Shown here piece by piece: positions 6,584 to 64,000 of a stretch of 64,000 nucleotides of DNA. Origin of the DNA: Podarcis muralis (Eukaryota). The translations under genes and the position numbers were made by a program. Where the stretch lies: assembly GCF_964188315.1 (NCBI RefSeq), contig NC_135670.1, positions 11,656,001 to 11,720,000 of the forward strand, given 5' to 3'. Each line of letters starts with the position of its first letter. The first letter of the stretch is position 1. The notes under the pieces are model-generated. The model searched no databases and was not told the origin of the DNA. It was given only the letters and a program-made list of their open reading frames with translations.

Positions 6584-6950
6584 GAGGGAAGCGGGCGGCG
6601 CTGTGGGTTAAACCACAGAGCCTAGGGCTTGCCGAACAGAAGGTCGGCGGTTTGAATCCCCGCGACGGGGTGAGCTCCCGTTGCTCTGTCCCTGCTCCTG
6701 CCAACCTAGCAGTTCAAAAGCACATCAAAGTGCAAGTAGAGAAATAGGTACCGCTCCGGTGGGAAGGTAAACGGCATTTCCGTGCGCTGCTCTGGTTCGC
6801 CAGAAGTGGCTTAGTCATGCTGGCCACATGACCCGGAAGCTGTCTGCAGATAAACGCCGGCTCCCTCGGCCAATAAAGTGAGATGAGCGCCGCAACGCCA
6901 GAGTCGGCCATGACTGGACCTAATGGTCAGGGGTCCCTTTACCTTACCTT
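6584..6950 (+). mobile_element. Sauria SINE
   Basis: GCGGCGCTGTGGGTTAAACC head, (ACCTT)n tail, 13-bp TSD TACCACTGTAATA (6571-83 / 6951-63). Confidence 0.9.
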
Positions 6951-7439
6951 TACCACTGTAATAAGAGTTACACTCCACTGCGATCTTTATTGGCCTGCTT
7001 TGTATAATGGTGGTTTTTCACTTAAAATCTACAATGCAAAAATATAGGGAACTTTTGGCATTCTAGATGCCACTGGATTACAAACTTCATAATCCCTGAG
7101 CATTGGCCATGCTGCCAGAGGCAGATTTACATTATTTTTATGCCTCTTTTACGTGTTTCCTTTTAACTCAGAGGCCCCCAAAGCAGCAAACGGAATATGA
7201 ATACAAAAGAAAATGCAATAAAAGTACAAAAAAAAAATCATCTGCTGTAGTAGGCAATATTGGAACTAAATTTAACTCTTAGGATCAGGCATATACTATA
7301 AATTAGACAATAGCTGCCACCAGCTACCCCACTTTGTGGCTCTTGCTGCAAGACTGAATCGCAGATAATCAATTTTCCATGACACATGATTTTAATGTTT
7401 GCCAACCTAACAGAGTACCTAATGTTAACTCAAACTCAC

Positions 7440-19600: not shown

Positions 19601-22600
19601 TGGATGCTCACTAGCTCAGCCTGAATCTTCCATTGGGTAAAATCCTCACTCTCTTCACTATGCTCTCTTTCTTTCCCTCCTGGCTCCCTTCAGTTGAAGA
19701 CAGACCGTGACTTGGACAGGTTAAAAGACTTGAAGCTTGAGGAACTATGGCTGGATGGCAACCTGTTGTGTGATAGCTTCCGCGACCAGTCTACCTACAT
19801 CAGGTGAGCAGTAGCCCTGGAGCTGCCTAAGATGTCCTGGAAGGGCGCACCTCCACCTACCCAGAGGGCATTCAGGGCATGATTAAGATGTTTCTTGCCA
19901 AAAGGCGTATTTTGCCCTCCTAGGGGTGCCAGCTTGGTTATTTTGACCCCAGAGCACCATCTGCCTCGGCTGCAGCCAAATCTCTGAAGACGCTGCATCC
20001 CATTCCTGGATCCTGAGTTGTGATTCTTGTGATAATGGTTTTATTTCAGCCAGATTGGAGCACTGCCCAGCCCCGTCTCCTCCCCCACCCCATATTGATA
20101 TTACTACATTTATTAGCTGAAATTTGCTTTTGTGGATGATCTGCCATATCGCACCTCCCAGCCACCCCAGCCTTGCTTCTCTTCCTTGTGAAATCTTCCT
20201 TTCCCCCTCCCCCGCTTTTCTGTCTGCCTTCCACTCTCCGCTCTGCACACGCCACTTGCTTTTCTCTGCCCCCGGGGGCTCTAGGACCTCAGGATGCGCA
20301 GCCTTTTCCATCCTCTCAAGTTCCCCATGTGCACTGCCACCCTCCTTTGAGCCTGCCATGCTGAGCCACCTTGTTCGTGGCCTTGCCTGCTTCTATATTT
20401 ATATATTGTGGCTCCCCAATGCTGTACCTGGAAGTACCATATTGCACAGAGGCACGTGGAAGTCTTTCTTTTGGAGAATTGAAGCTAAGCTGCTAAATCC
20501 TGGGGTGCCCCTGGTGCGTTTGGCTCTCACAGATGGCTGGTTAGCCAGTGACGGGTAAGATTCCTTGCGGAAGGAACAACCTAAGACAGGCACAGCCGCA
20601 CGGTGGCCAAACGGAGCCCTTCCGCCCGCCTCCGGGGAAGTTGGCAAACACAAGGCACCAGAACCCTCCTTCACAGGCTTGTCGTCGGCAAGTAGCTTTT
20701 GGACAGCCTCTGCGCCATTTCTAATGGGGAGACTTTTGCTTCTTGATGATCTGGGAGTGACGATGGTGCTGACTCTGGATGGAGCAGCAGCAGCAGACTG
20801 AAGTGACAAGCTTCTTGCAAGGAAAACTCTTTCTCCCCCAGTTGTGCACTTGGAAGTCCTGTTTGTGTGGCCAAGGCATCTGTATCTCTGCAGGGTTGGG
20901 GCGTCCAGAAGGGGCAGTGTGGAGGATGGATGAGGCTGTGCATCAGTAGGGAGGAGTTTCCAGGCCTTTTTTTCTTTGTTTCCATCACTCTGGCGTCCCT
21001 CTGCTTCTCCCTCCCCCACCCGCATCTTCCATGGTCATTAATTAGATTTGGGCCTTGATGCAGGAACTCTCCCAAAGCTGTTTTAAGTTGGGTGCCAGGA
21101 AGTTGGCTCAGGCATCTCCATGACCAGTGGGAATTCTTGTCCATTTCCCTACTTCCCCTTCCCTGCCCCTGCCCTCTGGCCTCAGTGGAGCGCTCCTCCT
21201 ATAAATTGGGCCATGTGGGTGAGTACACACTCAGGTAAGTGCAGAGGGAGACTTTGAGTAGCATGGCTTTGGAGACTTCTGCCTCTCGCACCCGTGTGCA
21301 TGTGTAAAACTACCACGGGAAGAGTACCAGAGCATTTTACTTTAAAGGCTGTGTTCTGCTACCTACTAATTTTTTGAAGTTGGCTAACTGTCACTCACCC
21401 TTGTATGGTATCAAGTGACAGAACCATAATAGTGAAATTGATCAACTTTTCCCTTAAATTGTCTGACAATATTAAAGGAAAGCTGACTCAGCATTTTCTC
21501 CTAGGTGAGATTTGAGTCAGATTTTAATACGCAGGGTGGGAAATGTCAAATATAATCAGATGTCTCTTTAAACTGGATTGCAGTAGTTCTCTAATCCAGC
21601 ATAAGCAGTACGATCCTTTTAACCCCATTCGTGTTGCTTCTTCTGTGGCTAACGGAAGATGCAGAGCCTAATACGGTTCCACGTGCAGCTTTAGCAACCC
21701 GTCCCTGATTTTGTACACGTTCTACCTTTGTTTAAAATGCTTGTACGTGTAAATTTCTTAGGCTTCCCAAGAAACATACAGTTTGAGAGCCTTGGGCGGT
21801 GGGCTTTCGTTAAAAGATTCTGGTAATGCCGCCATTTTGTGGTGTTTCTCCACGCTCCTAAGAAGGCCCAGATGCGTGGAATGAAACTTGTGGGACATGT
21901 CTCCTAAGTTCTTCCAGTTGGGGAGCTGGTTGTTGCTCTGTAATTCAGAATCCAGGAAGTGAGGTGTGGTGAGGTGAGGGTTCTGAATCACCAGTGGGCA
22001 GCCTATATAATTCGGTGGGCATCTGTTTGGCCCAGGATAACAAATTGATAACACCTCCACCTCCTGACAGCAGTTGAGGCAACTTCTTTTTGCAAGACTT
22101 CCCACCTTGGTTTTAAAGGATGCTTTAGAGAATGATGGCCAGTGGCCAGGGTGGGTAGAGGCCACAACAGGATGTAGTTCAGGTAGCACTGGCTGTAGTA
22201 GGAAGATGGTGGTAGCAGAAGGTGGGGACCACCCAGGTAGGCCACGGGTGGGGGGAGGGCAGTGCTCTTGGGGCACAAAGCTCTTTCATTCACTCCTTTT
22301 CCCCTTTCTGACAGCGCCATCCGCGAACGGTTTCCAAAGCTGCTGAGGCTGGTGAGTGAATTGTTCAAATTCCAGGTGGATTCTGAACCAGCTTTTGTAT
22401 CTGACAGTACTGTTGCCTTACCCTTCTGCCTCTCCCATCACAGGACGGCCATGAACTCCCCCCTCCGATCGCTTTTGATCTTGAAGCACCTACCACGCTT
22501 CCCCCTACTAAGGTACAGAAATGCTCGGAAGGGGCAGGGGAGGGGGCCTGTGTTGCTGTTGCCCTGAGAAAGCTGGCGCCTTTCGAGCCCTTGCTTCAGT

Positions 22601-24650
22601 CCCATTGCTTGGTGTGGCCTGTGGCATAGGATGCCTTAGGGCTGGTGCTAAGAGGGTACTTGGCAGGGTTTTTTTGGTGTTTGGGAGGAATGGAGGGGAA
22701 CAGATTAACATCCGGCTTCTCTCTTTGACTCTCCTCACTCAGGGCAGCTATTTTTGCTCTGAAGACTTAAAAGTGTTGATCCTGCGATTTCTGCAACAGT
22801 AAGTAGACCTGCAAGGTCTTGTACGTTAAAGAAAAGCAGAGCCCCTGCCAACAAGTTTATAACCTGGGGGATTTGGCACACACAAAAAGGGGAGCTAGAG
22901 GGTAAAGATCTTCAGTTTTAAGTTGGTTCCTGGGAAGAGGGTAGTGGTAATGATGCTGGCTGGCATTTGAAAACCAGGGTTTGAAATTTCATTCCAGTGT
23001 TTAAAACTTGGCTAGCAAAAAGGATCGTTGACTACTGTAATTGAAAGAAGCAAAAGGCTTTATTGAGGCACAGTACCCAATACAATAGGGACGCGAGTGG
23101 CGCTATGGTCTAAACCACTGAGCCTAGAGCTTGCCGATCAGAAGGTCAGCAGTTCGAATCCCCGCGACAGGGCGAGCTCCCATTGCTCAGTTCCAGCTCC
23201 TGCCGACCTAGCAGTTCAAAAGAACGTCAAAGTGCAAGTAGATAAATAGGTACCGCTCTGGCGGGAAGGTAAACGCCGTTTCCGTGCACTGCTCTGGTTT
23301 TGCCAGAAACGGCTTAGTCATGCTGGCCACATGACCCGGAAAAACTCTGCGGACAAACGTCAGCTCCCTCGGCCAGTAAAGCGAGATGAGCGCCGCAACC
23401 CCAGAGTCACTCGCGACTGGACTTAAGTGTCAGGGGTCCTTTACCTTTACCCAGTACAATGGAAATAACATAATAGAAATAATAAAGCGGCTACAGCCTC
23501 CCTTCCATTCTGGCTGTTTCTTTAGCAATGTTTGTATTCTCCCACAGATATTACACTGTCTATGATTCTGGGGACCGGCAAGGGTTATTGGACGCCTACC
23601 ACGATGGAGCCTGCTGCTCCCTGAGCATCCCCTTCTCACTACACAACCATTCCAGGTAAGTTTACGCTTCTGACATTTGTTCCCTTGCCAACGGGAGAGG
23701 ACTGCACTTTGCCCTGCTACACTGTGCTTTGGTTTTGGTGTGACATGGTGTGAGACAGGCTGTGTGCACCCTGTCTAAAGTTTCTGTGCCAAGATGTGGG
23801 GCATTTTGCAACCTATACTAAGCAAACAAGAGTTGCTTGTATTAGTCACAAGGAGATTCAAAGAGCTGTGTGTGGATCTTGCACATGCCTCCCATTCAAG
23901 TATTTCACGCTTTGCAAGCATGAAATCTTTTTGTAAGATGCCATACATTTGGTTGCATTGTGTTGATTGGCAAGAAGATTTGGTGATAAATAAATCTAAC
24001 TAGACTGTTCAGAGGACAGCTTACTTTTTTCAAAATCCTCCTACCAAGAGAGAGACTAGGTTGAAAGTACATGGAGCTGCTTGCTTTACTTTGGAGCCAG
24101 CTGGGGATTTAACCCTTGGCACGCTGCCTCCAAACCCAACATTTTGCCCACTGCAGCCAAGTATACACCTCCTGCTATGTAAAGAAAGACCTGGGGAAAC
24201 GGGTAGGCATTTATGTTCCTGTTTTGTCTGCAGGAGCACTCTGGCTGAATACTTCAAGAACAGCAGGAATGTGAAGAAGCTTAAGGATCCCAGTAAGTAA
24301 TGACCAGTGGCGGGGGTGGGGTGGGTGTACAAGGCTACAGACTCTTTTATGGACAGTGTGTAATCAAAAGTGTTTCATGGGAGATGGGCCCTGCACAGTG
24401 ATTCTGCTGCGGAGGTTGGGACCCCAGTGCACAAAAGAGGGGAGCTGAATGGTGAAAGGATTTGGGACAACGCTCAAATCCACACTGAAGCCCTTCATTC
24501 GTAGCAGTCCAGTTGTGGAAGAGGATAACAGAAAAGCCCCTGATTAAAGTGAATAAACTGTATTGTTGGCTATTTTGGAACAAGAGCAGTGGTTTTTTTT
24601 TATTTTTTAGGGTTGGGGCAGATGCTCCTACATTAGTGGATTGTCCCCCA

Positions 24651-24692
<42 letters not shown>

Positions 24693-27600
24693 ATCTGCTG
24701 CTGGTTTCTCCACTTTGGGTTTACTTCAGTGAAGGTAGTAATTGACCTTCCCTCTGCTCTCTCTGCCCCCAGCCATGCGCTTCAGGCTCCTCAAGCACAC
24801 AAAGCTAAACGTCGTGGCCTTCCTTAGCGAGCTCCCGAAGACTCAGCATGACATCAACTCCTTTATTGTGGACGTCTGTGCCCAAACGGTGAGTCAGGGG
24901 AGAAGGAACTGGCCAAGCACTTACCGCCTTTCAAGGAGTAGGTGAGGTCAGTGGGCAGGCAACAAGAAAGATGAGGAATGGGTTGTTGGTTGGGCGGAGA
25001 TTTGACTTGCCCCTGGTAACCAGTGGGAGCTGAGAAAAATTGCTACCTCTATGCAGAAAGTCAAAATATGTGTTGTTCAGCTGGAAATCTTGGAATCTGG
25101 AACAAAGTATGATTACATCCCCTCCCCATAAATACATACCCCCCCCCCATTGCTGCTCACTTTTCGATAAAGGCAATTTACTTCCAGGAAAACCATCCAT
25201 AGATCTCTTTTTATGCTGCTACTGTTTCAGTCCTTTTAGCTTGTTTTCAGTTGGCATGATTATAATTGTTTCTATTGCTGTGTATTTATCTTGTAAGCGG
25301 CTGTGAGTATTTCATTACAGAAAGGCGGGGTATACATCTTGATGTTAAACGATGTATATAACATCTGTGTAGGTTGCTGCCACAATCTCTTTGGCCTTGA
25401 GACCCTTCTTTTCTCATTGCAGAACACGCTGCTGTCTTTCACCGTCAATGGGGTCTTCAAGGAAGGTGAGTGTGCTGTTAAAAGCCTGCTTTGTGACACA
25501 TCCTGAACAGTGGGAAAGCCAGAAGACTTGCAGCACCCAGTGCCCCTTCTTGAAAACTCTAACCTGCGCTTTCTTTCTAAATTCTACAGTGGATGGCAAG
25601 TGTCGCGACTCGGTGCGCGCCTTCACCCGTGTGTTCATCGTTGTGCCTGCTGGCAATAATGGGTAAGGGTTATGAGCTTCAGGGCATTGACAAATCCAGG
25701 GATTGCAAGACAGGTGTGTCTCTGAAAGGGGCAGGTATTGGGAGGATGTTGAAATATTTATAGGGGGATGAGAGACAGAGCCTTAGCAGTCATGTCTGTC
25801 AGGAGCTGGGAACGCCAAAGGTTTTTAAAAATAGCCCATGTGCTGGAGGCATTGGGGGATTGGACAGCTAATAGAGGAGCATAATTTCTAGGGGACAGCC
25901 TGGCGCTGGTTGGGGAAGGGCCCTAGCTCAGTGCTAAAGCATCTGCTTTGCATGCAGAAGGTCCTAGACTTAGTCCCAGTATCTCCAGGTAGGGCTGGGA
26001 AAAACTCTCACCTGAAACCCTGGAGAGCTGCTGTCAGTGCAGTAAAGCAAGTCAGTGCAGGCAATACTGAGCTAGACCCAACAGTCTGACTTGGTGTGAG
26101 GCAGCTTCCTGTGTCACAATTCTTGCAAAAGATGTGGGGCTAGCATTGATTTTGGCATTTTCAGAAAGCATGTTAATGTTTAGAAGCAGGGGGATGACAG
26201 ATTAGTCATGCCTTACTTAACAGTTACAGTGTTCCAAAATATATATTCTCAGTAAATTTTAAAGTGGTTCCTTGCAGCACAGTTTTAAAAGCCAGGCCAT
26301 CAAGACAGGTTGATTGCCACTTGTCGAATCTAGCGACAATTCCTTTTTGCTGTAGTTGACTTTCCACAAGAACAGTGGGAGCATGGTTCAAAGAAAACAT
26401 CATGCTGGTGTGTCCCATTTTTTTCTCTGACTTCAGGACCCATTTTACTGAACATTGGCTAGATGCACTTCTAATATTTGCCACACTTTTTACTACTGTT
26501 AGAATATGGTGACCTTCTCTCCTTGGTGAAGGCAGAAGCAAGTATAGTGTCTAGCTGTTGCTCCTTTATTTATGGGAGCATCCTGCAGTGCTTGGCAAGA
26601 GATGCAAGCAAGCAAGCAAGCAAGCTGTAGGAGGTTCTGTTGTATGCATTAGCAGATCCTAACCTCTGCTTGCCGTCAGAGGGGTGGCCAGGAATAGTCA
26701 GGTCTCAGACTGAAAGGGTAGAAGGTGAAAGCATTCTGGCTACTCTACCCTCAATATTTCCTCCTTATGTTGGGTGTAGACTTGCAGCCCCTCCATTAAC
26801 CACTCCTGGCTCTTTTCCCCTCCTCTGCAGGCTGTGCATTGTGAATGATCAGCTATTCATTCGTAAGGCCACCAACAAGGAAATCCGCAAAGCTTTCGTC
26901 ATGCCAGCGCCCACGCCCTCCTCCAGCCCGGTACCCACGCTCACGGCAGAGCAGCAGGAAATGCTGCAGAATTTCTCACTGCAGTCGGGCATGAATCTTG
27001 AGTGGTCTCAGAAGTGAGTCTGGAGTTGCTGGGGGCTGGCAGTTGGGAAAAAGGAGTGGGAGATGGTCTTGAGATCAGGGTGGGGGGCAGGGAGGAAAAA
27101 TGAGATTAGGTTAGGCTGCTGCCTCATTGCTTTATCATCTCCCCCTACCCTTGCCCAGGTGCCTCTTGGACAATGATTGGAACTACGCTCATGCAGCCCA
27201 GGTTTTTACCCAGCTCAAGGTGAGTGCCCTAGTGCCTTTCTAGAGTGAGACCACCAGAACCTGCTGCCAGGCTTAAGAACTGGAGACAGAAAGTGATGGC
27301 TGGGATGGATTTGCACTGCACTGCAGTTCTGTTACAGGGGAGAAGCCTGGGTGGCTTTTCCTTCATTCTCAGGGTCTGATGTGCCGTATTTGAGGGTCAT
27401 GTTTTCCCCCAGAGGAAGTTTGCAAGGAAAGCCATCCCCTATGTAATATGCCTTGATGTGTGTATTCAGAGTTATTTGAAGCGAGAGAATCCAGAAACCA
27501 TTGCTGTTGGTTTCTGCTCTTTTGCTTTTCACCCATAGTGCAGTAATGAGAAGCTGATATGTAGCAGACTTTGCCTTTGGACGGGTGACTGTCCTCAGAA

Positions 27601-29904: not shown

Positions 29905-30076
29905 GGTAACTGACCGGAAGCTAAGGCTGCCCTCCCCAAAGATGGCGCCCGAAACGAGCATCCGCCTATGACTGTAGAGAAGGGGAAGTGGGTTAAAAAG
30001 AAAAGGGAGGGGAGAAATACTACAATTCCCATGAGCCTCTTGGGCTGCAGCTGACCTTGGCAAAAGCGGTTCAAGA
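29905..30076 (+). promoter_or_regulatory. TMEM223 promoter
   Basis: ETS ACCGGAAG (29913-29920) and YY1-type AAGATGGCG (29939-29947) immediately upstream of a CpG-rich coding exon. Confidence 0.6.
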
Positions 30077-32457
30077 ATGTTGCACTGCACATGGCGAGCT
30101 GGGCTGCGGATCGGGGGGCTGGCAGGTGGGGGAGCTGGAAGCTGCGGGGTTTGGAGGCTCTGGGGCCTCACGGGTCCTGTGCGCTTTTGGAGCTGGGGCG
30201 CGCAAAGGGCTCCCGGCGCGGAGCTGCCTCGGCGATGGGGCGCCCGGGGCGTGCAGACCGCCTTCCCGTTGGATACTAATGTGCCCCGGGATGTCTTGCT
30301 TTTCCAGCACGATCGAGGCCGTTTTTTCCGTATTCTCGGGCTGTTCTGCGCCGGCCAGTTCGTGTTCTGGGCGTATCTGGCACACTTCGCTTTCCACGGC
30401 TTGCGGGATGTTAGGGCGAGCCGGCCAGAGCCGGATCCCCAGCATGGGGAGCGCCCTCTGCCAACTCTACCGGGAGGAGCCACGATACAGTTGAGCTCCA
30501 ACAAGTGGCGCTTCGGTTTCACTGCGTCTTGCCTGACCGTGGGTAAGGAAGGGCTGGATTGCGCTGCCCGCTCCTCCTCCGGGGTTACTTATTAGCATTG
30601 GTTGCTCTTCGTTCTTATAGAATTGTGGAATTGGAAAGGACCACGAGGGTCATCTATTCCAACCCCCTGCAATGCAGGAATCGTTTTGGCCAGCATGGGG
30701 CTTGAACTCATAACCTCGAGAAGTTTACAATATAAATTGCAATCTTACTTTCATGAAATTGTAGGTTTGCTTCTTGTTGGTGGCAGATAGTATGTGGGGC
30801 ACAGCAGGAAAATGTATCCAAACGTAATATTGTGGGTTGCAGATCCATGGGTTGTAGCCAACCAAGTTCTACCCCCAAATAGATCCATCGAAATTAATTT
30901 ATCTAAGTAAGGCCCCTATCTAGGGACGCGGGTGGCGCTGTGGGTAAAACCTCAGTGCCTAGGACTTGCTGATCGCATGGTCGGCGGTTCGAATCCCCGC
31001 GGCGGGGTGCGCTCCCGTCGTTCAGTCCCAGCGCCTGCCAACCTAGCAGTTCGAAAGCACCTTCGGGTGCAAGTAGATAAATAGGGACCGCTTTCTAGTG
31101 GGAAGGTAAACGGCGTTTCCGTGTGCGGCTCTGGCTCGCCAGAGCAGCGATGTCATGCTGGCCACGTGACCCGGAAGTGTCTGCGGACAGCGCTGGCTCC
31201 CGGCCTATAGAGTGAGATGAGCGCACAACCCTAGAGTCTGGCAAGACTGGCCCGTACGGGCAGGGGTACCTTTACCTTTACCTTTTTAAGGCCCCTATCT
31301 GCACTATACATTTAGAGCAGTATCATTACCACTTTAAACAGGAACTGTAGTTGTTAACAGTACTGAGAGTTGTTAGGAAACCTCCCCTGTCATTTCCCCC
31401 ACAGAACTACGATTCCCAGAGTTTCCTGGAAAGAAGGATTGATTGTTAAGCCACTCTGGAAAGTGTAACTCTGTGGTGGGGAATAGGGGTCTCCTAACAA
31501 CTGTCAGCACCACTAACAAATGGCAGGCCCTGGAATTCTTTGGAGGAAGCCATGACTGTTAAGGTGGCATAATATTGCTTTAAATATAAGGTGCAGATGA
31601 GGCCTCAGCCATGCTCCTTTGTTTCATGGGGTCTACTCTGAGTAGAATTAACACGGATACAACCCAATAAAAATAAGGCACTCCCTGCCCAACTCAGGCT
31701 TATAACCAGGACCAAGGATCAGATCCAACATCCATGACTGGGGCAGGCGTAGTCTGAAACATCCATTAAGGCACCAGGTTGACACAGGCACCCAAATGTA
31801 TCAAAGCAGGCGCAAGTCCAGTTTCTGTGGGAAATTGCACAGGGTGGCTGCTACCACAAAACAGGCCTTTCCTTGACATAGGTCTGTCACAGCTCAGCTG
31901 GCAGAAGCACCTGGGCCATGAAGGTCTTTGAAGGTCACAATCTCTTTGAATCGGGTCCAAAACCAGAGTAGGAGCATGTGCATTGGCGAAGCGCTAGTAC
32001 ATGATGATTAAATTTCCTAGTCAGAAACCCAGCAACTGAATTCTGAACCACCTGCCATTTCTGAACCATCTCCCAAGGCAGCCTTAGGATTTATCAGGCA
32101 TTGCAGTAGCCTGACCACTTGGTTATCTCAGCTCGACTTGACATCCTGCTCTGTTCCTTTGCAGGTTCTCTGATCTTGGCGGCAGGTTTTGTCTTTTCCC
32201 GACGCTCTGTGAGCCGGATCTTGCTGCACCGAGGTGGGCAGGAGGTGACCTTTACCACCTATTACCCCTTGGGCTGGACCTCGTCCTTCACGGTCCCTCT
32301 TCGCCATGTTTCCTGCATGTCCCATCGTACGGAGGTGCCGGCGATGATGCCACTCAAGGTTAAGGGGAGAGCCTTCTATTTCCTGTTGGACAAACAGGGA
32401 CGGATCACCAACACAAAGCTTTTTGACATCACTGTTGGCGCCTATCGCAAGCTGTGA
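30077..32457 (+). CDS. TMEM223: Transmembrane protein 223 (mitochondrial inner membrane), about 252 aa; start codon uncertain
   Basis: Exon 30077-30542 (...RDVLLFQHDRGRFFRILGLFCAGQFVFWA...CLTV G|gtaag) joins in phase 1 to exon 32165-32457 (GSLILAAGFVFSRRSV...VPLRHVSCMSHRTEVPAMMPLKVKGRAFYFLLDKQG...LFDITVGAYRKL*). It lies directly downstream of NXF1, as in mammals. Confidence 0.93.
30922..31286 (+). mobile_element. Sauria SINE (second subfamily) in the TMEM223 intron
   Basis: GGGACGCGGGTGGCGCTGTGGG head, (ACCTTT)n tail, 14-bp TSD TAAGGCCCCTATCT (30908-21 / 31287-300). Confidence 0.9.
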
Positions 32458-48100: not shown

Positions 48101-51100
48101 CAAACTGGGAACCGTGGCTAGCATCTTCCAAACAAGCTATGATTTGTGTAAGCCAATGTTTCCCAGTTTGGATGTAACAGGAAACTATGGTTCCTGGCTT
48201 GAGTCCCTTGCTCACACAAAAGGAGGGGCAAAGTTCGTGCCAAGGAGCCACAGTGCGCGTGCATATTCTGGCTTGTAAAGTCAGGATTTGATCCTCCGAA
48301 CTTGGCTTGTTAAGTCTGTGGGCATAGTTGGGCTGTTAACTCTGCTGGCTGAGTCCTACATCATCTCTGGAGCTAGCATTGAGCAGGGGATCCACTCTCT
48401 TACTGCACTGGCAGCCCAACCTTTATTCCCCCTCCCCGCCAATAACACCTTTGCTGTCTTCCTGTCACTCCAGGTCTGAAGCAGCAAATGGATTATTTAA
48501 GTAAACTCAAAGTGAAAGGTTTGGTGATTGGACCTCTCCACGTCAATCCTGAAAACGACCAGGCTGGAACCAACCTCAAAGACATCGACAAAAGATATGG
48601 GACGCTGGATGAGTTCCGGGAAGTCCTGCAGGTGGCGAAGAAAAAAAGTAAGGGCCAAGCGTAACCACAATGGCTACTAGCTGTTGCTCTGCCCCTGAAT
48701 GCCAGTTTCTGGGAATTGCAAGGGAGGAGAGGTGCTGTTGTGCTCAAATCCTGCTTGGTGGCTTCCTTTTTAAGGAATCTGTTTGGCCACCGTGACAAGA
48801 GGATGCTGGGCTTTGGCCTGATCCATCAGCCAGGATCTTGCTATTATATCCCTGGCTGCAGTGCCAGCAAGAGGTCTCTGGAGAAGTTCTAGGAGTCACC
48901 TTTCTGACTTGTGATGTGCCTTGCCTCTCTCTTTCAGGCTTGAAGGTGGTTTTGGATCTGACCCCCAACTATCGTAGCCAGTCGCCTTGGTTCAGCCAGG
49001 AGTTCAGTCTTAACAAGGATTTGCAGGACAAAATGAAGGTGAGGGAGGAAAAGCACACAGTGGAGCATTGGGAAGATCTTAAGGTTGCCACCTTTTTTGG
49101 GTGGTGATGGGGAGGAATTTCTTTACACCTGTGCCTGGGTATCACAGGTGAGGAGAGTTGCTGCTTGCTTGCCCACCCCCCAGGTCTAAGGTTCTCCCCC
49201 ATCTGATTTATAGAATAATAATAATAATTAATAATTTATTATTCATATGCCACCCATCTGACTGGGTTGCCCCAGCCACTTTGGGCGGCTTCCAACAAAT
49301 GATATAAAACTGCAATAAAGCACCAAACATTAAACACCATAGAATTGTAGCGCTGGAAGGGACCCCAAGGGTCATCTAGTCCAACCCCTGCAATGCAGGA
49401 CTATGCAGGTGGCCCATACAGGGTTTGAACCTGCGACCTTGGCGTTATCTTTTTTTTTTTTTTAAATAAATTTTTATTAGTTTTTCATAAGTAAGAAAGA
49501 AACAAAGCAAAAACATAAACAAACACAAAATTGACTTCCCCGTACCACCCCTTTTCTGCATTCTTGTTTCAAGATTTTTCAGCAACCCTTTCGTAATAAA
49601 CTTGTTTATATTTCATAAATTTAACTTCCATAAGTTATTAATACAACTGTAGTTCTTTATCTCTTATTACCCTGAGCCCCTAATTTTCCAAATTACAACA
49701 GTTTTTAAGATAAACTTTGAATTTGTTCCAATCTTCATCCACCGCCTCTTTCCCCCGGTCTCGAATTCTGCCAGTCATCTCTGCCAGTCCCATATAGTCA
49801 ATCACCTTCGTCTGCCATTCTTCCAACGTGGGTAAATCTTGCGTCTTCCAATACTTTGCTAGAAGGATTCTTGCTGCTGTTGTGGCATACATAAAAAATG
49901 TCCTATCCTTCTTTGGCACCATTTGGCCCACCATGCCCAAGAGAAAGGCTTCTGGTTTTTTAATAAAGGTTCTCTTCAGAACTTTTTTAATTTCATTATA
50001 GATCATTTCCCAGAAAGCCTTAATCTTCGGGCAGGTCCACCAAAGGTGATAGAAGGTTCCCTCCGTTTCATTGCATTTCCAACACTTGTTGTTGGGCAGA
50101 TGATAGATCTTTGCTAACTTAGCCGGAGTCATGTACCACCTGTAGATCATTTTCATAATGTTTTCTCTTAAGGCATTACATGCCGTGAATTTAACACCAG
50201 TGGTCCATAACTGCTCCCAGTCAGCAAGCTCAATGTCATGCCCCATATCCTGTGCCCATTTAATCATACTAGATTTCACCATTTCATCTTGGGTATTCCA
50301 TTTCAACAGCAAGTTGTACATTCTTGACAAATTTTTAGTATTGGGTTCTAACAGTTCTGTTTCTAGTTTTGACTTCTCCACTTGGAAGCCTTTCTTTCTG
50401 TCCTGTTTAAATACTTCATTTATCTGTCGATAATGTAGCCAATCTCTCACCTTAAACTTCAGCTTCTCGAAACTCTGCAATTTTACTTTTTCACCATCTT
50501 GTTCTATGATTTCAGAATATTTAGGCCAATTAGAACCCATATTCAATTTTTTCACCTCTTTTGCCTCCATTGGTGACAGCCACCTAGGGGTTCTACTTTC
50601 AAACAGATCTTTATACCTTATCCAAACATTATACAAAGCTTTCCTCACCATATGGTTCTTAAAACCTTTGTGCACTTTTACCTTGTCATACCATATATAT
50701 GCATGCCAACCAAATCTGTTATCAAATCCTTCAAGATCCAAAATGTCTGTATTCTCGAGGAGCAGCCAGTCTTTCAACCAGCAAAACGCTGCTGATTCAT
50801 AGTAAAGTCTTAAGTCCGGCAGGGCAAAACCCCCTCTATCTTTTGCATCTGTTAATGTCTTAAATTTTATTCTTGGCTTTTTGCCCTGCCAAACAAACTT
50901 CGATATGTCTTTCTGGCGTTATCAGCACCACGCTCTGACCAACAGAGCTAACTAGTCTGAGTCTAAATACTTTAGATCGAATTTAAAAACTAAACAAACC
51001 TGTAATTGGTCACATATAGCCATTTCTCAAGCAACTTGGGGCAGTGCACATAGCATTACTGGCCTTGCAACAATCCCGTAAGGTAGGCTGAAACAGCAGC

Positions 51101-54100: not shown

Positions 54101-57100
54101 TAGGGCTGGCAATTTCCCCCCACCTGAAACCCTGGAGAGCTGCCGCCAGTCATTGTAGATAATACTGAACTCAATGGACCCAACGGTTAGACTCTGTATA
54201 TAAGGCAACACCCTGTAGTTCTAAGTAAGATGTAAGCACTAGTCTGTGCAAGGAACCTGCATGTCCTTTGCTTCAGGCAGCAAGGTCTGTTTGGTCTGTT
54301 GTTGTTTTGCAAAGGGTGCGTGGGAGCAGGAAGGGTCAATGAGGCTGAGGAGATACAGCAGCGGAGGCAAGTTTTCGGTTCTTCTGTCTGGTGGTTTCAG
54401 GAAGCTAGATGGGCCAATGGTCTGATTCTATACAAGGCAGCCCAGTGGAAAGGCACCTGCCTCTTCATCAGCCATAGGCATGTAAATGTGGGCGCACTGT
54501 TTTTGAAGACTGGAGAGAAACCAGAGAAAGTTATTATTGTGGGGAGAGCATGGGGAGAATTGAAAGGTGCCAGGAGCTTCAATGCCCCCCCACAGACGTG
54601 CAGGAGAGGCATTCCTTGGCCCCTGCTGCTGGATAACCCAGTTCTTGCCAAAGGATTGTAGTTTTCACTTTATGAAAACAAAAATCTTGGCAGCACAACA
54701 AATGCCTTGCAAAGGGGCCTGCTGTTTCCGGAGTTCCCATGGCTCCATGCAGGAGGTGCACAAACAACAGCCAGCTGCTCTGTGGGCGGATGCTCAAGCA
54801 GCAATATCTATTTGTTGGACCATTTTAAGGCTTGCTCTGGGTGCTAGGAGCAGATCCTGAGTCTGTAACATGCTGGAGCTGCCAGGGCAGGGATGGGGAA
54901 CTGTGGTCCTTCAGATGTTGCTGAACACCCAGCTCTCATCAGCCTCAACCAGCAGGGCCGATGGTCAGGGAGAGTGTGAGTTACAGTCCAGCATGTGGAA
55001 GGCCACAGGGTTCACCTTCTGTTCTGGACACATGTCTCAGCCAATCAGGGATGACATATTAAATGCACTTACAGAAGGGTAAATCAGAGATAAGGGCCAT
55101 CAGCGCTGGTCAGCTTGGTTGATTGTCAGGGATTTTGGGAGTTGTAATCTGTGGAGCACAGATTCCCCCTCTCTGTTTTAGGGGATCAGATCTGGCCCAG
55201 TGGTATCCTCCCCACCACATAAGAAGAACCCCGCTGGATCATGCCAAAATCCCACCTGGTCTAGCATTCTCTTCTTAAGCAGCCCAACCGGATGCTCTTA
55301 TGGAAAGCTCTCAAGCAGTGCCTGAGCGCAGCTGTAATACTCTCCCCAGGCTTGATTCCCAGATACTGCCTTTCACAGTGGATAGAGAACATAGCCATCA
55401 TATTCCATCCCGCATCACATGCAGAAATGCAAACTTTTGTTTTTTTATAATGTGTCAAGCCTCCGGGGGCAGCATGGAATCTGGGCAAATTTAATGGACA
55501 AAAACGTTACTTATATTTGCATTGTGGTTTTTAGACTTGGAAATTCAGATTTCTTCCTGCAAAACACTGGTGGTGGTGGTGGTTTTTAAGGTGCTGCAAT
55601 GGGTCGTGTGTGATGGGTCTTGTTTTTTTTCTGACACCCCCCCCCCCCCCAAGTTGCAGCCATGCTAACAGTAGGTTCTTTTCTTCCTCCAGCCTGCAGC
55701 CTCCAGTGTCATTCGTATGCAGTGGGATAATTCAGCAAACTTTGGATTTTCGAAAGCAAATCAGCAGCAGGTTAACACAGCAGCCAGCAATGTCACTGTA
55801 CAGGTGAGTTGCAGGAGTGATGGGAGAAATGTGGGTGGCTCTTGCCAGTAATTTGTAAATTATATGAGGACACATGCCAGCATGTCACAAATAAATATAT
55901 CCCCAAAATTATCAGCTTAATGCCAACCAAAACTCCATCTAGCCTAGCATCCTGCTTCTAACTGGTCAGCCAGACGCTCCCATGAAGCTCACCAGCAGGG
56001 CATGAAGGCTCTTGTCATAGGAACATCAGAAAGACTGTCTTGTACTGAGTTTGGTCATTGGTTTATCTGGCTTTGTATTGCCCACACTGACTGGCAGCAG
56101 CTCTCCAGGTTTTGAGGCATGCGGCATTCCCAGCCTTCCTGCAGGGGCTGGGGATTGAACCTTGGGGCAAGGCAGTCTCCTTGGTTCCCATTCTTCTCCA
56201 GACAAAGTCCAGCCAGATAACTCAGGAGCCAAGCCCAGTGTGGTATAGACCGCTGGTGCCAGTTAGGTCATTTTTAGACTCTGGACTTAACGGTCCAGCA
56301 TGGAGGGCCTCTGGTGCTGATGTCTGCCCATGCCTTCACTTACCTCAAAACTGGGAAAATCTGGCCCTGCTGTGTTTGGGGCTCCTCCTTGCTCATTCTG
56401 CTGAATTGGGGCCCTGGACTTCTGCCTGAAAGGCCTCCCTTACAGTCACCATTGAGCGGGAGAGCTTTCCCTTGCTGCTTGCCCCCAGTGTCTGGTAGGC
56501 AGAAGTTTATGCTGCATACAAACCATACATTTAAAGCACATTCACCTTCCTCCCTGCAATAATCCTGGGAGCTGTAGTTTAACACACACAGAGCTACAAT
56601 TCCCAGCAGTGCCCCTAGCAAACTGCAGTTCCCAGGATTTCTGTGTGCTTGCGCTTTAAGTTTATGGTGTGTATGCAGCCTTAATCGCTAAGCAGTTTTT
56701 AGATTTTTAACGCCGGTAACGCGAGAAGTGGTTAAGGAATAACCACTCTCTCCTCTCTGTCTCTCTCCCCTCTCTCTCTCTTCCCCTACCCCTTCTGCAC
56801 AATCCCTGCAGTCACAGAACAGCGACCCGGCTTCGGTCTTGTCGTTCTTCAAGCAGCTGAGCGAGCTGCGGGGGAAGGAGCGCTCCCTCCTTCACGGCGA
56901 ATACACAGAGGCTGAAACCAGCAACCCGAGTGTCTTTGCCTACCTGCGGGTCTGGGACCAGAACAAGCGCTACCTAGTGGTCCTCAACTTTGCTCCCAGG
57001 GACCAGACCATCTCCATAGTGACGTCCCCTCCCCTCCCAGACCAAGTCACAGTGGAGCTCAGCACGCAGCCCACGGAGGAGAAGAAACAGCTGAGTGTAC

Positions 57101-57159
57101 GGGAACTCAAGCTGGCTCCCTCGGAAGGGCTCCTGCTCAGTTTCCCGTATGTGGCCTAG
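45116..57159 (+). CDS. SLC3A2: 4F2 cell-surface antigen heavy chain (CD98hc), about 556 aa
   Basis: Exons 45116-45569, 48474-48647, 48938-49038, 51341-51409, 51771-51835, 52993-53197, 53850-53993, 55693-55803, 56812-57159 (1671 nt, open). Motifs: DTELDMKDVELNEMETEKQPMN, KFTGLSKEELLKVAGTPTWVRTRWALL, TM helix, light-chain disulfide Cys (QAPRC), GH13-like ectodomain (VVLDLTPNY, LLYTLPGTPFTDYGDEIGL), C-terminal GLLLSFPYVA*. Confidence 0.96.
46634..46674. promoter_or_regulatory. Candidate stress-response enhancer in SLC3A2 intron 1 (AARE + CRE + ARE/MARE)
   Basis: GTTTCATCA (46634-42, reverse complement TGATGAAAC), TGACGTCA (46648-55) and GCTGACTCAGCA (46663-74), in a locally CpG-rich patch. Confidence 0.6.
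47125..47350 (+). mobile_element. CR1 LINE fragment (RT C-terminus)
   Basis: GCCAGACCACACCTGGAG...TGTGTCCAGTTCTGGGCACCACA...CAGAGGAGGGCAACCAAGATGATCAAGGG, typical of CR1 ORF2 (RPHLE-CVQFW). Confidence 0.8.
49338..50953 (-). mobile_element. tRNA-Ile-derived SINE with CR1-like tail, split by the L1 insertion
   Basis: Rejoined minus strand reads AGTTAGCTCTGTTGGTCAGAGCGTGGTGCTGATAACGCCAAGGTCGCAGGTTCAAACCCTGTATGGGCCA, followed by a tail ending ATTCTATG. Similar tails occur near 1988-2045 and 30620-30715. Confidence 0.75.
49450..50913 (-). mobile_element. 5'-truncated L1-type LINE (ORF2 C-terminus) in SLC3A2 intron 3
   Basis: About 410 open codons (50912 to 49680) including GGFALPDLRLYY and the CCHC knuckle CWKCNETEGTFYHLWWTC. 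AATAAA plus a 14-nt poly(A) tail. 10-bp TSD TGGCGTTATC at 49440-49449 and 50914-50923. Confidence 0.93.
53448..53583. other. Assembly gap (136 N) in SLC3A2 intron 6
   Basis: N run. Flanking exon phases are compatible, so no exon needs to be missing. Confidence 1.
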
Positions 57160-59639
57160 TTTGACTTGTGGCTCCCCCAACCTGACAGGGAGGAGCAAAA
57201 GAGCAGGGTCTGTGCAACTGTCTTTGGAAAGGAGCAGCCTCTGAATTCTTGAAAGGGCGCAGTTTTCACAGCATTCTGATCTTACTCTCTCCTGTATCAC
57301 CTGAATTTTTTTAACACCTGTCTCTTCTCTCCCTCTGCTCCCCTAATTCCTTCACTCCTTGTACATTCCTTGACCTGCCAGTATCTGGAAAAAAGAAACT
57401 TTTTATAGTAGGAGGGGGGAATAGGTGGACCCTCAGGATGTTGTTGAACTCCGACTCCCATGATCCTTAGCCAGGGTGGCCAGTTGTTGGGTAGGATGGG
57501 AGTTGTAGTTCAATAACATCTGGAGGGCTGTGGGGGTCCCTCACCCGTGGTGTAGAGCTTAATGTCCCCACCACCACCGGATACACTAACATGTCATGTG
57601 CGTGAACAGACTGTCCACAGCTCCAGTTTTGAATATCATTTCCACATGGTGTGTGTGCTTGTCATTTGGCTGGGCAACTTTCTTCCTTGAGAACTGACAA
57701 GTAAAGTTATATGTTTTTGTCCAAACTACATGCCCCAGCTCCTTCTAAGCCTCTGTACTTAACTTTGTGGAATGAATATTACTGCAGGCGCGAGCCTGTC
57801 CTGTTCGTGTGCCTGTCTTGTTTGCCAAAACTGTTGTGAACTGGTATGGAATGAGTTTAATAAATTTCTCTCTGCTGACTCTTGTGGTTTCTGTTCAGAA
57901 TGGTAGTGTTTATGCATGTGCACACAGCCTCTTTCAATTCCCCTGGTAAATCCCAACTCATTCAACAGCACAGTCGTCAGTGGCAGGGGTAGAAGTATGG
58001 CAACTGGCCTAGACTTACCCCCCTCAACAGCTTGGGACCAGGTTACTTAAGGGTACATGTGCTGTTCAGATGGGTCACCACTGAGAGTAACGCATGCTTA
58101 GATTGTACTGGAAACCAGCAATCTGGAATCAATTATCAGCCAAAATTAGACAGGCACCTAAGTGTCTTGATGGCTAGTTGCCAACTGAATGTTTTGGTTT
58201 AAGAAGTCTTTCCCTGAGGAGTGACCCAGCTCTTTATGAAATATAAATTTTATATCTTAAGATTTTTTTTAAAGTGTTTGTAGGAATGGTATTCATTTTT
58301 CGTTATGCTTTGATGGCCTCAGGCTGTGACACAGTTTTAGGTTTTCTTTTGCTTTTTCAAAACCCATATTTACAGCTGTAAACATAGGTTACGGTAGCTT
58401 TCAACCTTTTCTGACATGGGACCCATCTTTAACTGAAACAAGCAGGCAGGGATTTTTCTTTTCACCATAGATATATGGGGGTAATACAGTACTGCTGATG
58501 CTCATTTATTTTATTGCGACCCACCTGAGACCAGCTTGTGAGTTGGTAGTGGGCTCTGACTCAGCAATTAAAGAGTAATGAATAATAATGTGGATACTAG
58601 CAGGCTGGTGCTTGGGGGCCACAGACAATGCTGTGTAGAGGATTGGGGTTTTGGGTACACTACATAACTTACACTCTTTTCCACAAGAAGTGGGATGTGT
58701 ATGAATTATTCCTGAAAAAGAAACTATTGAATGCGTGTGAAGAGTTGTTAACATGTTGAGTTTGGGTATTTGTCTCTACAGTGCCTGCCTATGTACCCTT
58801 CACACATGATACTCAAATGTGCTTCTTGTTACTGCCAACTCATTTAATTTTGTGAGTTAGGTATTTAAAAATACAATCTGTGAAATTCCTTGGAATTTCA
58901 AAACCCTTCAAAAAGGATGGGGAGGACCTTTGCTGGGAGCCCTCCAGATGTTGGACTCCAACTCCCATGAGCCCCCAAGACTAATGGGGAAGCATGATGG
59001 GAGTTGTAGTTCAGCAGCACCTGGAGGGCTACAAGGCCCCCAGCCCTGCAGTAAACTGACAAAGGAGTACAGGACAGTTTAACATGACTTCTGGCTTGCA
59101 CTCAAAGACTTGAGGAATGAGGTTATCGCCCCTCTTTTATTGTCCATTTCTGGTTGCCCAGCCACTGCCACAGTGCCCTTTCTCTTGTCAGATCAAGATG
59201 AGCAGGTGACAGCAAAGGTTGCAAGGTTTTTAGCTGGGGCAATTAGAATAAGATCCAGTAGTTGACTATTGATTCAAAACCCTAAAATGCATTTTATATA
59301 ATCGACTTTTTATTTCTATTCTTTGTATATCGCCTTGCTGTTTTATTGCTATGGCCGATGGCTGACGCAAATAAAGATTGGTTCATTCATTCATATGCTC
59401 CCAGCAGTCCTAAATAGGAATTATCACACCCAGCCATCTCTTTTAAGTAAAGCTTCCCTTTTACTTGTGTGCCCCCCCCCCAGATTTCCACCTCCCCTTT
59501 AATCACCCTCTAAAAAATACCGCCGACACCATTCCTCTCCCCTCCCCAACTTCCTCTTCCCCGTAACCCACTTATTTACATTCCCGCCCCCTCCTCCTCC
59601 CCGGCTCACAACACGCCCTATTTCCTCGCGGCTTCCCCT

Positions 59640-60001
59640 TTAAGCTGCCTCCCCTGACGCAATGCAGGTGAGGCTAGGCCAATGGGACGTCGGGCGGCGG
59701 CGCACGTGACTGCGGAGGGGGCGGGCCCGGGGGTTATTTAAAGGGCCGCCTTTCCTATTGCTGCGGCCGCGGTTGCCGGGGGCTCGCCGGAGGGAGGGGA
59801 ATGCGCGTGCGCGCGGGGCCCGGGAAGTAACGTTCGGCGCTTGCCGTTAGAGCAGAGGAAGAAGAAGAGGAGGAAGAAGAGGGCGAGCGAGAGCGCTTGC
59901 GCGAGCGGGGCAACGGCGACGACTCAGCCCCGGGTGGAGGGAGACGGACGCCAGCCAGGAGCCGAGAGGTCGCAGCGCCGCTTCCCCTCCCCCACGTCAC
60001 C
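59640..60001 (+). promoter_or_regulatory. Calmodulin CpG-island promoter and 5' UTR
   Basis: TGACGCAAT (59655-63), CCAAT (59679-83), E-box CACGTGAC (59703-10), GC box near 59717, TATTTAAA (59735-42), then a GAA/GAG-rich UTR ending in CACCATG|GTGAG. Confidence 0.8.
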
Positions 60002-63000
60002 ATGGTGAGCGAGGGAGGGAGGGGGGCTTAAATGGGGAGGGGGCGAAGAGGGAGGTCATGTGAGGAGGGGGGTCTCGACCTGCCCCCCCCCCGCAGTGTG
60101 GCGTCTTAAGGGGGTCAGGCCCCTTTTCTCAATGGAGGGCTATATGGGGAGGGGACCCTCTCCAAAATGAAGATGTCTGTGTTGGGGAGGGGTCTTCCAC
60201 CATGGAGATCTTCCCATGGTCAGGTTCAAGATAAATAAGGTTTTTAGGATTCACATCCTATCCCCCAAATATGATGTGCGTGGAGTTGGGTTAATGGGGG
60301 GGGGGGGTGCTCCGATGTCTGATGGGGACGGAAGATGGGGGCCTTTGTGGCTTTTATCATATTACTGGGTCACAGGGAGGGGGGCTGGGACATCCCACCA
60401 ATGATGGCATATTATAGGGTGGAAGCTTATGAAGGTGAAGAAGTGGGAGGGGTTCAAAGTGTCTTTCCTCCTCCCACCCCCCATTTTTTATTTTTACCCA
60501 TGTTGGGGGTTTGAGGAGCTGGAAGTGGATGGGTTAATAGGAGATGGGTGTAGAGGAAGAAAAAGCTGTATATGGCCAGCTTTCCCCTCCCTCTGCAAAG
60601 GATGTGGGGGTGATGAAGTCTAAGGGGAATCTTTTAACTTCTCCCCAAAAGCGGGAGGAGTCAAGAGAGGAATCGCCTCAAAAACAGCTGCACCTGTGGA
60701 ACACCCTCCCCTTAAAAATGAAGGTGGAAGTCTTCTTGGAATGGGCTCATAAAAGTATGCAGCACTGGCAGAGAGAGATTTATAAAGGTTGGGGTGCTGA
60801 GAAGAGGATCCCTTAAATAAGGGGGGATTTGATAAAAGTGTGGATACTGGGATAGTTGGGGTTCCTCATATTCCCCCAAAAGTGGGGTGCTCAGCTAAGA
60901 GGCAGTTGATAAAAGATGGAGCATTGGGAAGAAAACTCCTGAAGAAGGAGGGTGATGTGATGAGAGAATATGAAAAAGGGGTTTGCCTGTCTTGAAATGG
61001 GAAGAACATAATTTGCAAAATTCAGAGCAGGTGGATAGGAAAGGGGGTGCCTTTAAAAGGAGATTCTGTTGTGTGACTAGAAAACCTCATTTTGAGGGCA
61101 CTTGAACTGCTGAGAAAGAGAAATGATAGTGGACACCTGATGGGGGAGAAAAGAGGCTTGTGCATGCAAGAGGGTGTGAGAATAAGAAGTGGAGGACACA
61201 CCCTTCAAGGAGTTACGTGCATGCTTGAGAGAATGACTGTGCTTAAGGCATCTCAAGTTTAAAAATGAGATAATGACAATATATAGACAAGGGTATATTT
61301 CAAAGTGAGGATGCATAGGAACATTGGACTTTATTGTGAGGAGTGGATAGTAAATCAGTGTTTTAAAAATGCAAAATAATGTGCTTTGTAGAGATCCAGA
61401 TCATTGGTCCATCTTGCTCAGTGGCTCTCTGGGTTTTCTGGCAGAAGTGCTCCCCAGCCCAGCCTGGAGATGCTGGGCCTTCAACCAGGGACCTTTTGCA
61501 TGCAAAGGAGGTGCTCTTCCACTGAGCTACAGCCCTTACCTAAAGCCTTGCACAGATTGAGAATGGAAATATAAAGGGAGCAGGGGTGAATCCCAAGACA
61601 GATGATGGGGTTGGGAGATACAGTATGAGCAGACAGGAGGGAGGATCTGTGTTTGTTCTCCCTCTTCCCTCATGTGGTTTCCATTAAATAAAGAATTAGT
61701 GGAAAGACAGTTGAGAAACTGGAAAGAGGCGCTTCCCTGAGAGAGGATTAAAAACTCCCCTTATGATTATAAAAGGAAAACATTGAAGGGTTTGGTGTGA
61801 TGTTGGTCACCTACCTTCTGATGAAGAGGGGAGGGGCACATGTTCCCAAGCTCTGTTGTGTCCTCCGAGTGTGAAAACGTAGATTGTAGCCTTCTAAGGG
61901 CAGAGATCTCCCTCTCTCCTGTTTTTGTGCTTATACTGCTTTGTAAACCACCATAAATGTTGGTTATAAATAGAAAAATGCTAACAATCTAAAATGGGTT
62001 ATTGACACAGGAACTTGGTGCATGTGATAAGGCTACATAAGGAAGGGTTAGGAGAACTTGAAGTAGGTGAGGTGGGAACCATAGGTGGCAGGAGCCCATC
62101 CAAGTTTGGAAGCAGTACAGGATGCGTGGAGAAGAGAGTCAGAGAGGAGCTGGTGGCCTCATGTTACCCTTCCTGAAGGCTGAAGTTGATGGACTGTACC
62201 TTGGGAAGAACACCTGCTTTGCATGCAGAAGGTCCCAGCTTCAATCTCCAGGAAGGGCAGGAGAGACCCCAAGCTGAAATCCTGATGAACTGCTGACAAT
62301 CAGTGTTGACAGTCCTGAGCTTGATGGACAAATGGTCCAAGTAAGCATAAGGCAGCTTCCTATATAAGGCAGGCCTGTGGGGAGTGTTCTGTTCTTAGTC
62401 AATAAGTCTACTTTGTTTGAGTTCAGATGTGAGTCTTTGGGAGAGAGCGGAGGCAACAACTGCACTGAGTTCAGAAGTCAATGAGTGTGTGTGTGTGTGC
62501 GTGAGAGAGAGAAAGAGAGAAAGAAAAATAAATGGGGTGCAGCTGTCATGGACCAGGAAGGTGAGACCTGCAAAACTTACTGATTTTCTCTCTCCTCCCT
62601 CACCATTCTCCATGGCCTTCCTGCAGGCTGATCAGCTGACAGAGGAGCAAATAGCAGGTGAGAAATTATCTTGCTCCTGGGGACAGGAACATTGGCAGCA
62701 TCTGTCAAAATCTAAAGGGTTTGATGGTACCAGTTGTGTGGCATAAATGTCAAGAGAGCCAGCAGTTGGTGCTGGACTTGGTCCTCCATCCAAACTCTAG
62801 CTTGGCCCTGAACGTCCTAGCTAAACTCACTGCCTCACAATCTCCCAGCCTTTGCTCCTTTCCTGTGTAAAAGAGGAGCATGTGTAATGTCCTTTCTCAA
62901 AAGTACTTCTCTGAATACTGCTTGACCTCTGCCCTACTGATTTAAACCCTTAAAGCCAGCTGAGTGTACCTTGAAGGGAGGGGAGGAGCATGCTGATGTC

Positions 63001-63878
63001 GCTGCGTCCTGAAAAAATGCTATTAAAACAGTACTGGGTGTTTGGGCCCAGGATCTTTTAAGGGCTGATGCATTAGGGCGGTTCTATCCCCCATTCTTCG
63101 GCTGATCACCGAAGAATTGATGCTTTTGAATTCTGATGCTGGAGAAGACTCTTGAGAGTCCCATGGACTGCAAGAAGATCAAACGCATCCATTCTTAAGG
63201 AAATCAGCCCGGAGTGCTCACTGGAAGGACAGATCCTGAAGCTGAGGCTCCAGTACTTTGGCCACCTCATGAGAAGAGAAGACTCCTTGGAGAAGACACT
63301 GAGGTTGGGAAAGATGGAGGGCACAAGGAGAAGGGGACGACAGAGGACGAGATGGTTGGATAGTGTTTTTGAGGTTACCAGCATGAGTTTGACCAAACTG
63401 CGGGAGGTAGTGGAAGACAGAGGTGCCTGGCATGCTCTGGTCCATGGGGTCACGAAGAGTCGGACACAACTAAACGACTAAACAACAACAATCCCCCAGC
63501 AAGACTTGGATAACCTGCATGGGAGAATATTTGCGTTCTTCCCCCAAACACAGCCTGGGTAGTCCTTCCCCTCTCCATACCTGCCAAGGTGATAACTGGG
63601 TTTAGGAGGAGGTTACAAATGTACTCAGCTAGCCCCTTTCCTTTCTGGTTTCCTTTCTGAGTTTGGGGGCTGGGACTTGGGTTGGAGGGGGTAATATCTG
63701 GCCCTGAGCTATCTCTCTTCCCTGCCTCTTTCAGAGTTCAAAGAGGCCTTCTCCCTCTTTGACAAGGATGGCGATGGCACCATCACCACCAAGGAGCTTG
63801 GCACCGTCATGCGCTCCCTGGGGCAGAACCCCACTGAGGCAGAATTGCAAGACATGATCAATGAGGTGGATGCTGATG
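60002..63878 (+). CDS. CALM: Calmodulin, first three coding exons (continues past the window end); paralogue not assigned
   Basis: ATG (60002-60004) | 62627-62657 | 63735-63878 gives [59 protein letters not shown](G), the canonical vertebrate CaM N-lobe, with the canonical 3/31/144-nt exon pattern. Confidence 0.97.
63111..63490 (+). mobile_element. BovB (RTE) LINE 3' end in calmodulin intron 2
   Basis: Translation [49 protein letters not shown], a GAGTCGGACACAACT 3' motif and a (CAA)n tail. Confidence 0.9.
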
Positions 63879-63924
63879 GTGAGCTGGGCACTCAAGACTC
63901 TGGGGACGGGTGGGAAATGGGGTA

Positions 63925-64000
63925 GTGCTGGAACAGGTATTGGATTGGAACTGGAACAGGTATTGGATTGGATTGGAACAGTGCTGGAACTGGAGGATTG
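63925..64000. repeat. GGAAC/GGATT-based minisatellite running off the window end
   Basis: Repeats of CTGGAACAGGTATTGGATTGGAA. Confidence 0.75.

Follow-up and report, generated by a model that had tools for sequence, protein, structure and literature searches.

A stretch of 64,000 nucleotides from the genome of the lizard Podarcis muralis (contig NC_135670.1, positions 11,656,001 to 11,720,000 of the forward strand; hereafter the window) contains a genuine intron-containing calmodulin (CALM) gene directly after SLC3A2, the distance from the SLC3A2 stop codon to the CALM ATG being 2.84 kb. STX5, NXF1, TMEM223, and SLC3A2 all lie upstream of CALM on the same strand. An earlier reading of the window (the original prediction) had described an intron-containing calmodulin with a CpG promoter and an unchanged N-lobe, 2.8 kb past the SLC3A2 stop codon and linked to NXF1, STX5, and TMEM223, and the exons, splice sites, CpG island, and neighbor matches confirm this description. 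We consider it probable that the SLC3A2-linked gene is the fourth ohnologue of the two rounds of vertebrate genome duplication (2R), that is, the CALM copy of the block resembling human 11q12-13, although we infer both its 2R date and its distinctness from CALM1, CALM2, and CALM3. Under this hypothesis the two genome duplications would have produced four CALM copies, the fourth being the SLC3A2-linked gene, and this copy would have been lost in mammals and removed from its slot in crocodilians and probably in birds too. The gene is of the ubiquitous type: it combines a promoter carrying TATA, CCAAT, cAMP response element (CRE), and E-box motifs inside a CpG island with the canonical six-exon CALM layout, and encodes the same 149-residue Ca2+ sensor as CALM1-3. 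We also lean toward the view that the gnathostome ancestor had four CALM genes encoding one protein, one per 2R block, with the 11q12-13-type gene, beside MSK2 and SLC3A2, still present in lepidosaurs and turtles but gone from mammals through an independent loss and from crocodilians through a clean excision.

The lizard gene has the structure of a canonical CALM gene, in which the first exon terminates at the ATG. Exon 1 (59770-60004) consists of the 5' untranslated region (UTR) and the ATG only, its presumed 5' end lying ~30 nt past the TATA-like box, and a script check of the window sequence located the ATG at 60002-60004 with the donor GTGAGC immediately after it. Intron 1 (60005-62626; 2.6 kb) is followed by exon 2 (62627-62657; 31 nt; acceptor ending in CCTGCAG, donor GTGAGA), which encodes 10 residues and the first base of a Glu codon, and intron 2 (62658-63734) by exon 3 (63735-63878; 144 nt; acceptor ending in CTTTCAG, donor GTGAGC), which encodes EF-hand 1 and the first part of EF-hand 2. 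All of these features are on the plus strand, as is the beginning of intron 3 (63879-64000; donor GTGAGC), within which the window ends; exons 4-6 of the lizard copy (residues 60-149, the C-lobe) lie past the window end. The splice sites are AG/GT throughout, the acceptors of exons 2 and 3 being of the polypyrimidine-AG type and the donors GTGAG, and the introns fall at canonical CALM positions. Spliced exons 1-3 translate to canonical calmodulin residues 1-59. All 47 residues that exon 3 shares with solved calmodulin chains (residues 13-59) are identical (47/47), and the exon matches Pfam EF-hand_1, EF-hand_6, and EF-hand_7, the EF-hand Ca2+-binding loops being intact. There are no assembly gaps (N runs) between 53584 and 64000, so the SLC3A2-CALM interval is gap-free.

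The promoter and 5'UTR are covered by a CpG island (59600-59999, plus strand) with a GC content of 0.69, 48 CpGs, and a CpG observed/expected ratio of 0.89-1.17, compared with 0-0.6 in the flanks. Within it, the core promoter (59629-59746, plus strand), which includes the block GGCTTCCCCTTTAAGC, is conserved in lizard, python, and turtle. Its motifs, all on the plus strand, are a CRE-like TGACGCAAT (59655-59663), a CCAAT box (59679-59683), an E-box CACGTG (59703-59708), a GC box (59717-59725), and a TATA-like TATTTAAA (59735-59742). By blastn the lizard core promoter is 75-77% identical to the corresponding segments of python (L001:26086-26202) and turtle (L002:16719-16815). In the three-way alignment the motifs are invariant or nearly so, including TGACGCAAT, CCAAT, CACGTG, and TATTTAAAG, and the GC box is present in both squamates and deleted in the turtle. 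The conservation of the CALM core promoter spans ~280 million years.

Orthologues were collected using SLC3A2 as the anchor, and the loci were retrieved with 10-kb flanks. In Python bivittatus (L001) the order is TMEM223, SLC3A2, and then a calmodulin gene on the same strand, and in Chelonia mydas, the green sea turtle (L002), a calmodulin gene begins 1.5 kb past SLC3A2 and is followed by a large gene with two kinase domains on the opposite strand. The reference CALM exon plan consists of an ATG-ending exon 1 followed by coding exons of 31, 144, 107, 136, and 29 nt with fixed intron phases. Exon 1 falls within an N gap in both the python and the turtle assemblies; the coding exons found in the two species have exactly these sizes, their junctions are all AG/GT, and each gene encodes a complete canonical 149-residue calmodulin. 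The public gene models at the locus are imperfect: that of python has 113 residues and that of turtle 153, through truncation or a wrong start. Between python and turtle, 61 of 429 coding positions differ, including 41% of third positions, and there are zero amino-acid changes. Of the 171 positions compared in the lizard gene, 10 are different in python and 20 in turtle, again with synonymous changes only, and at the DNA level the lizard exon 3 is 94% identical to that of python, 89% to that of turtle, and 88% to that of the bird Anhinga. The python and turtle genes resemble the lizard gene in slot, strand, exon sizes, core promoter, and the restriction of differences to synonymous sites, and they differ from it in intron lengths and repeat content.

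Because python and turtle have the complete gene at the same position, with its core promoter conserved and its differences confined to synonymous sites, the lizard gene must be functional and its assembly correct; it is no retrocopy, and it predates the squamates. As judged from sequence, this calmodulin gene works and is driven by a promoter of the housekeeping type, and its product is predicted to be an ordinary Ca2+ sensor; the CpG island, the promoter conservation in three species, and the purifying selection lend indirect support to its presumed expression. The python and turtle genes are, on this evidence, its orthologues, evidently under long-term purifying selection, and the assembly is judged correct. 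The SLC3A2-CALM slot dates at least to the lepidosaur-turtle ancestor, so the gene is no squamate peculiarity.

Human calmodulin is reported to be encoded by three genes, located on chromosomes 14, 2, and 19 (PMC9839377). In our view the strongest argument that the SLC3A2-linked gene is a fourth 2R copy is its position, which favors such an origin. The gene lies in a block paralogous to the CALM1-3 regions, as indicated by its neighbors SLC3A2, TMEM223, NXF1, and STX5 and, in turtle, by an MSK2-like kinase. Human 2p, 14q, 19q, and 11q form a four-fold paralogon (EML1-4, the FOS family, RTN1-4, LTBP1-4, and MAP4K1/2/3/5), of which 11q12-13 is the one member not known to have a CALM gene. Human RPS6KA5, which encodes MSK1, is located close to CALM1 (14q32.11), whereas RPS6KA4 maps to 11q13.1; MSK1 is the only paralogue of MSK2. 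The position favors the fourth ohnologue because human CALM1 neighbors RPS6KA5, the paralogue of RPS6KA4; moreover, the turtle CALM gene is arranged tail-to-tail with its MSK kinase, as human CALM1 is with RPS6KA5. A later duplicate or a relocated CALM1, CALM2, or CALM3 would have had to land by chance in exactly the predicted fourth block.

The assignment of the kinase draws on comparison with Alligator mississippiensis (L008), in which SART1 and SLC3A2 are followed by a two-kinase gene that lies on the opposite strand, its 3' end 1.7 kb past SLC3A2. By tblastx, the kinase after turtle CALM and the kinase beside alligator SLC3A2 are the same gene. The alligator gene encodes 762 residues, and its closest solved relative is RPS6KA5/MSK1, at an E value of 2e-16 versus 1e-12 for RSK1-3; from family and location we read it as a probable MSK2/RPS6KA4. 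The turtle slot runs SLC3A2, CALM, and then, in the opposite orientation, MSK2, and the alligator slot is the same minus calmodulin. In the crocodilian line this looks like a clean excision of CALM from the slot. The original prediction had proposed a fourth copy kept in squamates, which is partly supported: the order SLC3A2-CALM-MSK2-like in turtle fits the paralogon on which that proposal was based, and the limitation to squamates was too narrow, as the turtle has the gene.

Several points weigh against a 2R origin. The gene was seen only in lepidosaurs and one turtle, and no copy was found outside sauropsids, the taxa other than the lizard having been inspected over only 10 kb flanking SLC3A2; with this distribution, an origin at 2R requires several later losses or separations. 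The 1.7-kb interval between SLC3A2 and the kinase in alligator (L008:25434-27124) contains no trace of calmodulin exons, where the turtle has a 3-kb CALM gene. Within the 10-kb flanks there is no CALM gene in budgerigar (L006; order SART1, SLC3A2, TRMT112, BANF1, MUS81), and there are no CALM exons in the spadefoot toad Spea bombifrons (L003) or in the electric ray Narcine bancroftii (L004), which has COX8 downstream. For SLC3A2 of the frog Lithobates pipiens the annotation is empty, with zero genes called within 10 kb. The SLC3A1/SLC3A2 pair, which had been cited in support of the paralogon with reference to SLC3A1 at 2p21, is weak evidence that carries little weight, as the pair may predate 2R.

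Lizard, snake, and turtle have the gene in this slot, and alligator, budgerigar, frog, and ray do not. For the sampled taxa the most parsimonious explanation would be a segmental DNA duplicate of a CALM gene, introns and promoter included, that entered the interval between SLC3A2 and MSK2 in the sauropsid stem lineage and disappeared again in archosaurs by deletion. We nevertheless think this unlikely. Such a duplicate needs the chance landing in the predicted fourth paralogous block described above, and the taxa counted as negative are those inspected over only 10 kb, in which the gene order around SLC3A2 is moreover rearranged, the ray having COX8 there and the bird SART1, TRMT112, and BANF1. 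The 41% third-position difference between python and turtle further indicates that the gene goes back at least to the divergence of these two lineages.

Similarly doubtful is the proposal that the gene corresponds in sauropsids to CALM1, CALM2, or, most plausibly, CALM3 as its orthologue, brought beside SLC3A2 in reptiles by a translocation in one lineage, in which case sauropsids would still have three genes. The CALM genes encode one identical protein, so protein data cannot separate them. A compact GC-rich CALM gene also occurs on a contig of the bird Anhinga rufa (L007:1293-2357). Its exons 3-6 fall within 1.07 kb, with a GC content at third positions (GC3) of 0.93 and three introns seen, of 72, 88, and 489 nt; the contig is an unplaced one of 10 kb without SLC3A2 or the kinase, its only other feature being a CCDC81-like fragment (6894-7211, minus strand). 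The third-position distance between the Anhinga and turtle genes is 40%, near the 41% between python and turtle despite the GC3 of 0.93, which hints at orthology with the turtle gene. Against a translocation stands the fact that the SLC3A2-linked gene occupies the sole paralogon block that lacks a human CALM gene, beside an MSK2-like kinase whose paralogue neighbors CALM1. Furthermore, human CALM3 lies amid genes with paralogues on 2p and 14q (PRKD2, STRN4, and DACT3) and so is seemingly in its original place.

That the gene is a retrocopy, a pseudogene in decay, or an artefact of assembly, in favor of which there is only the restriction of the window to exons 1-3, is highly improbable given the gap-free SLC3A2-CALM interval, the canonical introns, the same arrangement in two other species, and orthologues with complete open reading frames whose 61 python-turtle differences are all synonymous. 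A retrocopy is excluded by the introns at canonical CALM positions, and a mis-assembly by the cross-species synteny, python and green turtle sharing the SLC3A2-CALM arrangement together with the conserved promoter.

Compared by protein and layout, the lizard gene resembles human and mammalian CALM1 (14q32.11) in its identical residues 1-59, its ATG-only exon 1, its 31- and 144-nt exons, and its GC-rich promoter. It differs in lying in the SLC3A2/NXF1/STX5/TMEM223 block and in the distance to the MSK gene, which is ~3.6 kb in turtle versus ~450 kb in human, where TTC7B lies between. Human CALM2 (2p21) and CALM3 (19q13.32) are likewise similar in protein and gene architecture and in occupying blocks paralogous to 11q12-13, and they differ in their neighboring genes. 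A further comparison is offered by chicken CCM1 ("calmodulin, striated muscle"), also an extra calmodulin-type gene in a sauropsid; CCM1, however, is an intronless retrogene with amino-acid changes, whereas the SLC3A2-linked gene has canonical introns and an unchanged protein. Full-text literature searches turned up neither a description of a fourth canonical CALM gene nor any mention of a CALM gene linked to SLC3A2. The name Calm4 in the literature refers to a mouse calmodulin-like gene.

The calmodulin family is very well known, and if it is indeed an ohnologue, the SLC3A2-linked gene exemplifies a common class, that of ohnologues missing from mammals. Calmodulin is the textbook example of an identical protein produced from several genes, of which mammals are invariably said to have three. 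If the gene is a 2R copy, the 2R set would be complete, its fourth canonical member lying in the fourth block as predicted, and the loss of a copy would have been tolerated and would have occurred more than once, in mammals and in crocodilians. Reptile CALM genes should then not be named by mammalian orthology alone, and expression or dosage studies in reptiles must count four loci. Reptiles with four genes would also offer a natural experiment on the effects of calmodulin dosage and on the reasons for retaining multiple genes for a single protein.

The other genes of the window, all on the plus strand, were identified as follows. The last exon of STX5 (3233-3436) encodes a SNARE motif (Pfam SNARE, E 5e-18) and a membrane anchor, and its C-terminal sequence points to STX5. 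NXF1 (12013-27014, about 12-28 kb) was recognized from exon translations and from Pfam Tap-RNA_bind, LRR_NXF1-5, NXF_NTF2, and TAP_C, and is mapped without its last exon. TMEM223 (30035-32454) has two coding exons (Pfam PF06979, E 1e-16 and 1e-31). The first coding exon of SLC3A2 (45116-45572; Pfam SLC3A2_N, E 2e-35) is 82-84% identical to those of scincoid lizards, namely the skink Lerista and the cordylid Hemicordylus, a similarity from which the animal was read as a scincoid-like lizard. The last SLC3A2 coding exon with the stop codon (56812-57159) matches human 4F2hc at an E value of 5e-26 versus only 2e-5 for rBAT, and sequence reading places a poly(A) signal, AATAAA, at 57859-57864. In human the STX5-NXF1-TMEM223 block is inverted relative to SLC3A2, and WDR74/SNHG1 adjoin SLC3A2. 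An Rfam scan of the whole window gave zero matches, so there is no small nucleolar RNA host gene beside SLC3A2 here. A 365-residue open reading frame at 49680-50777 on the minus strand, in an AT-rich SLC3A2 intron, has no Pfam match and may be repeat-derived. Putative tRNA-derived short interspersed repeats lie in the SLC3A2-CALM spacer at 57420-57550 and 58900-59040 and in CALM intron 1 near 61400-61530 and 62180-62300, and what is presumably the 3' end of a BovB-like long interspersed element, recognized by its 3' tail, lies in CALM intron 2 (~63100-63495).

TMEM223 lies directly upstream of SLC3A2 in the window and likewise in python, whereas in turtle only a FAM161-like gene is called within 10 kb upstream. 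This FAM161-family gene lies at L002:1-134, ~10 kb upstream of SLC3A2. Human FAM161A is on 2p15 and FAM161B on 14q24, and the turtle gene may be another extra member of the paralogon. SART1 is the upstream neighbor of SLC3A2 in both alligator and budgerigar. The sturgeon contig (L005) stops 2.8 kb past SLC3A2 and is thus uninformative on CALM. Lithobates pipiens has two distinct SLC3A2 genes (P0010 and P0251) on one 240-Mb chromosome. Polypterus senegalus and Erpetoichthys calabaricus (P0383 and P0337) encode a "calmodulin-like" protein of 149 residues with the termini of CALM and ~25 substitutions, and this bichir protein could be a fast-evolving extra CALM copy.

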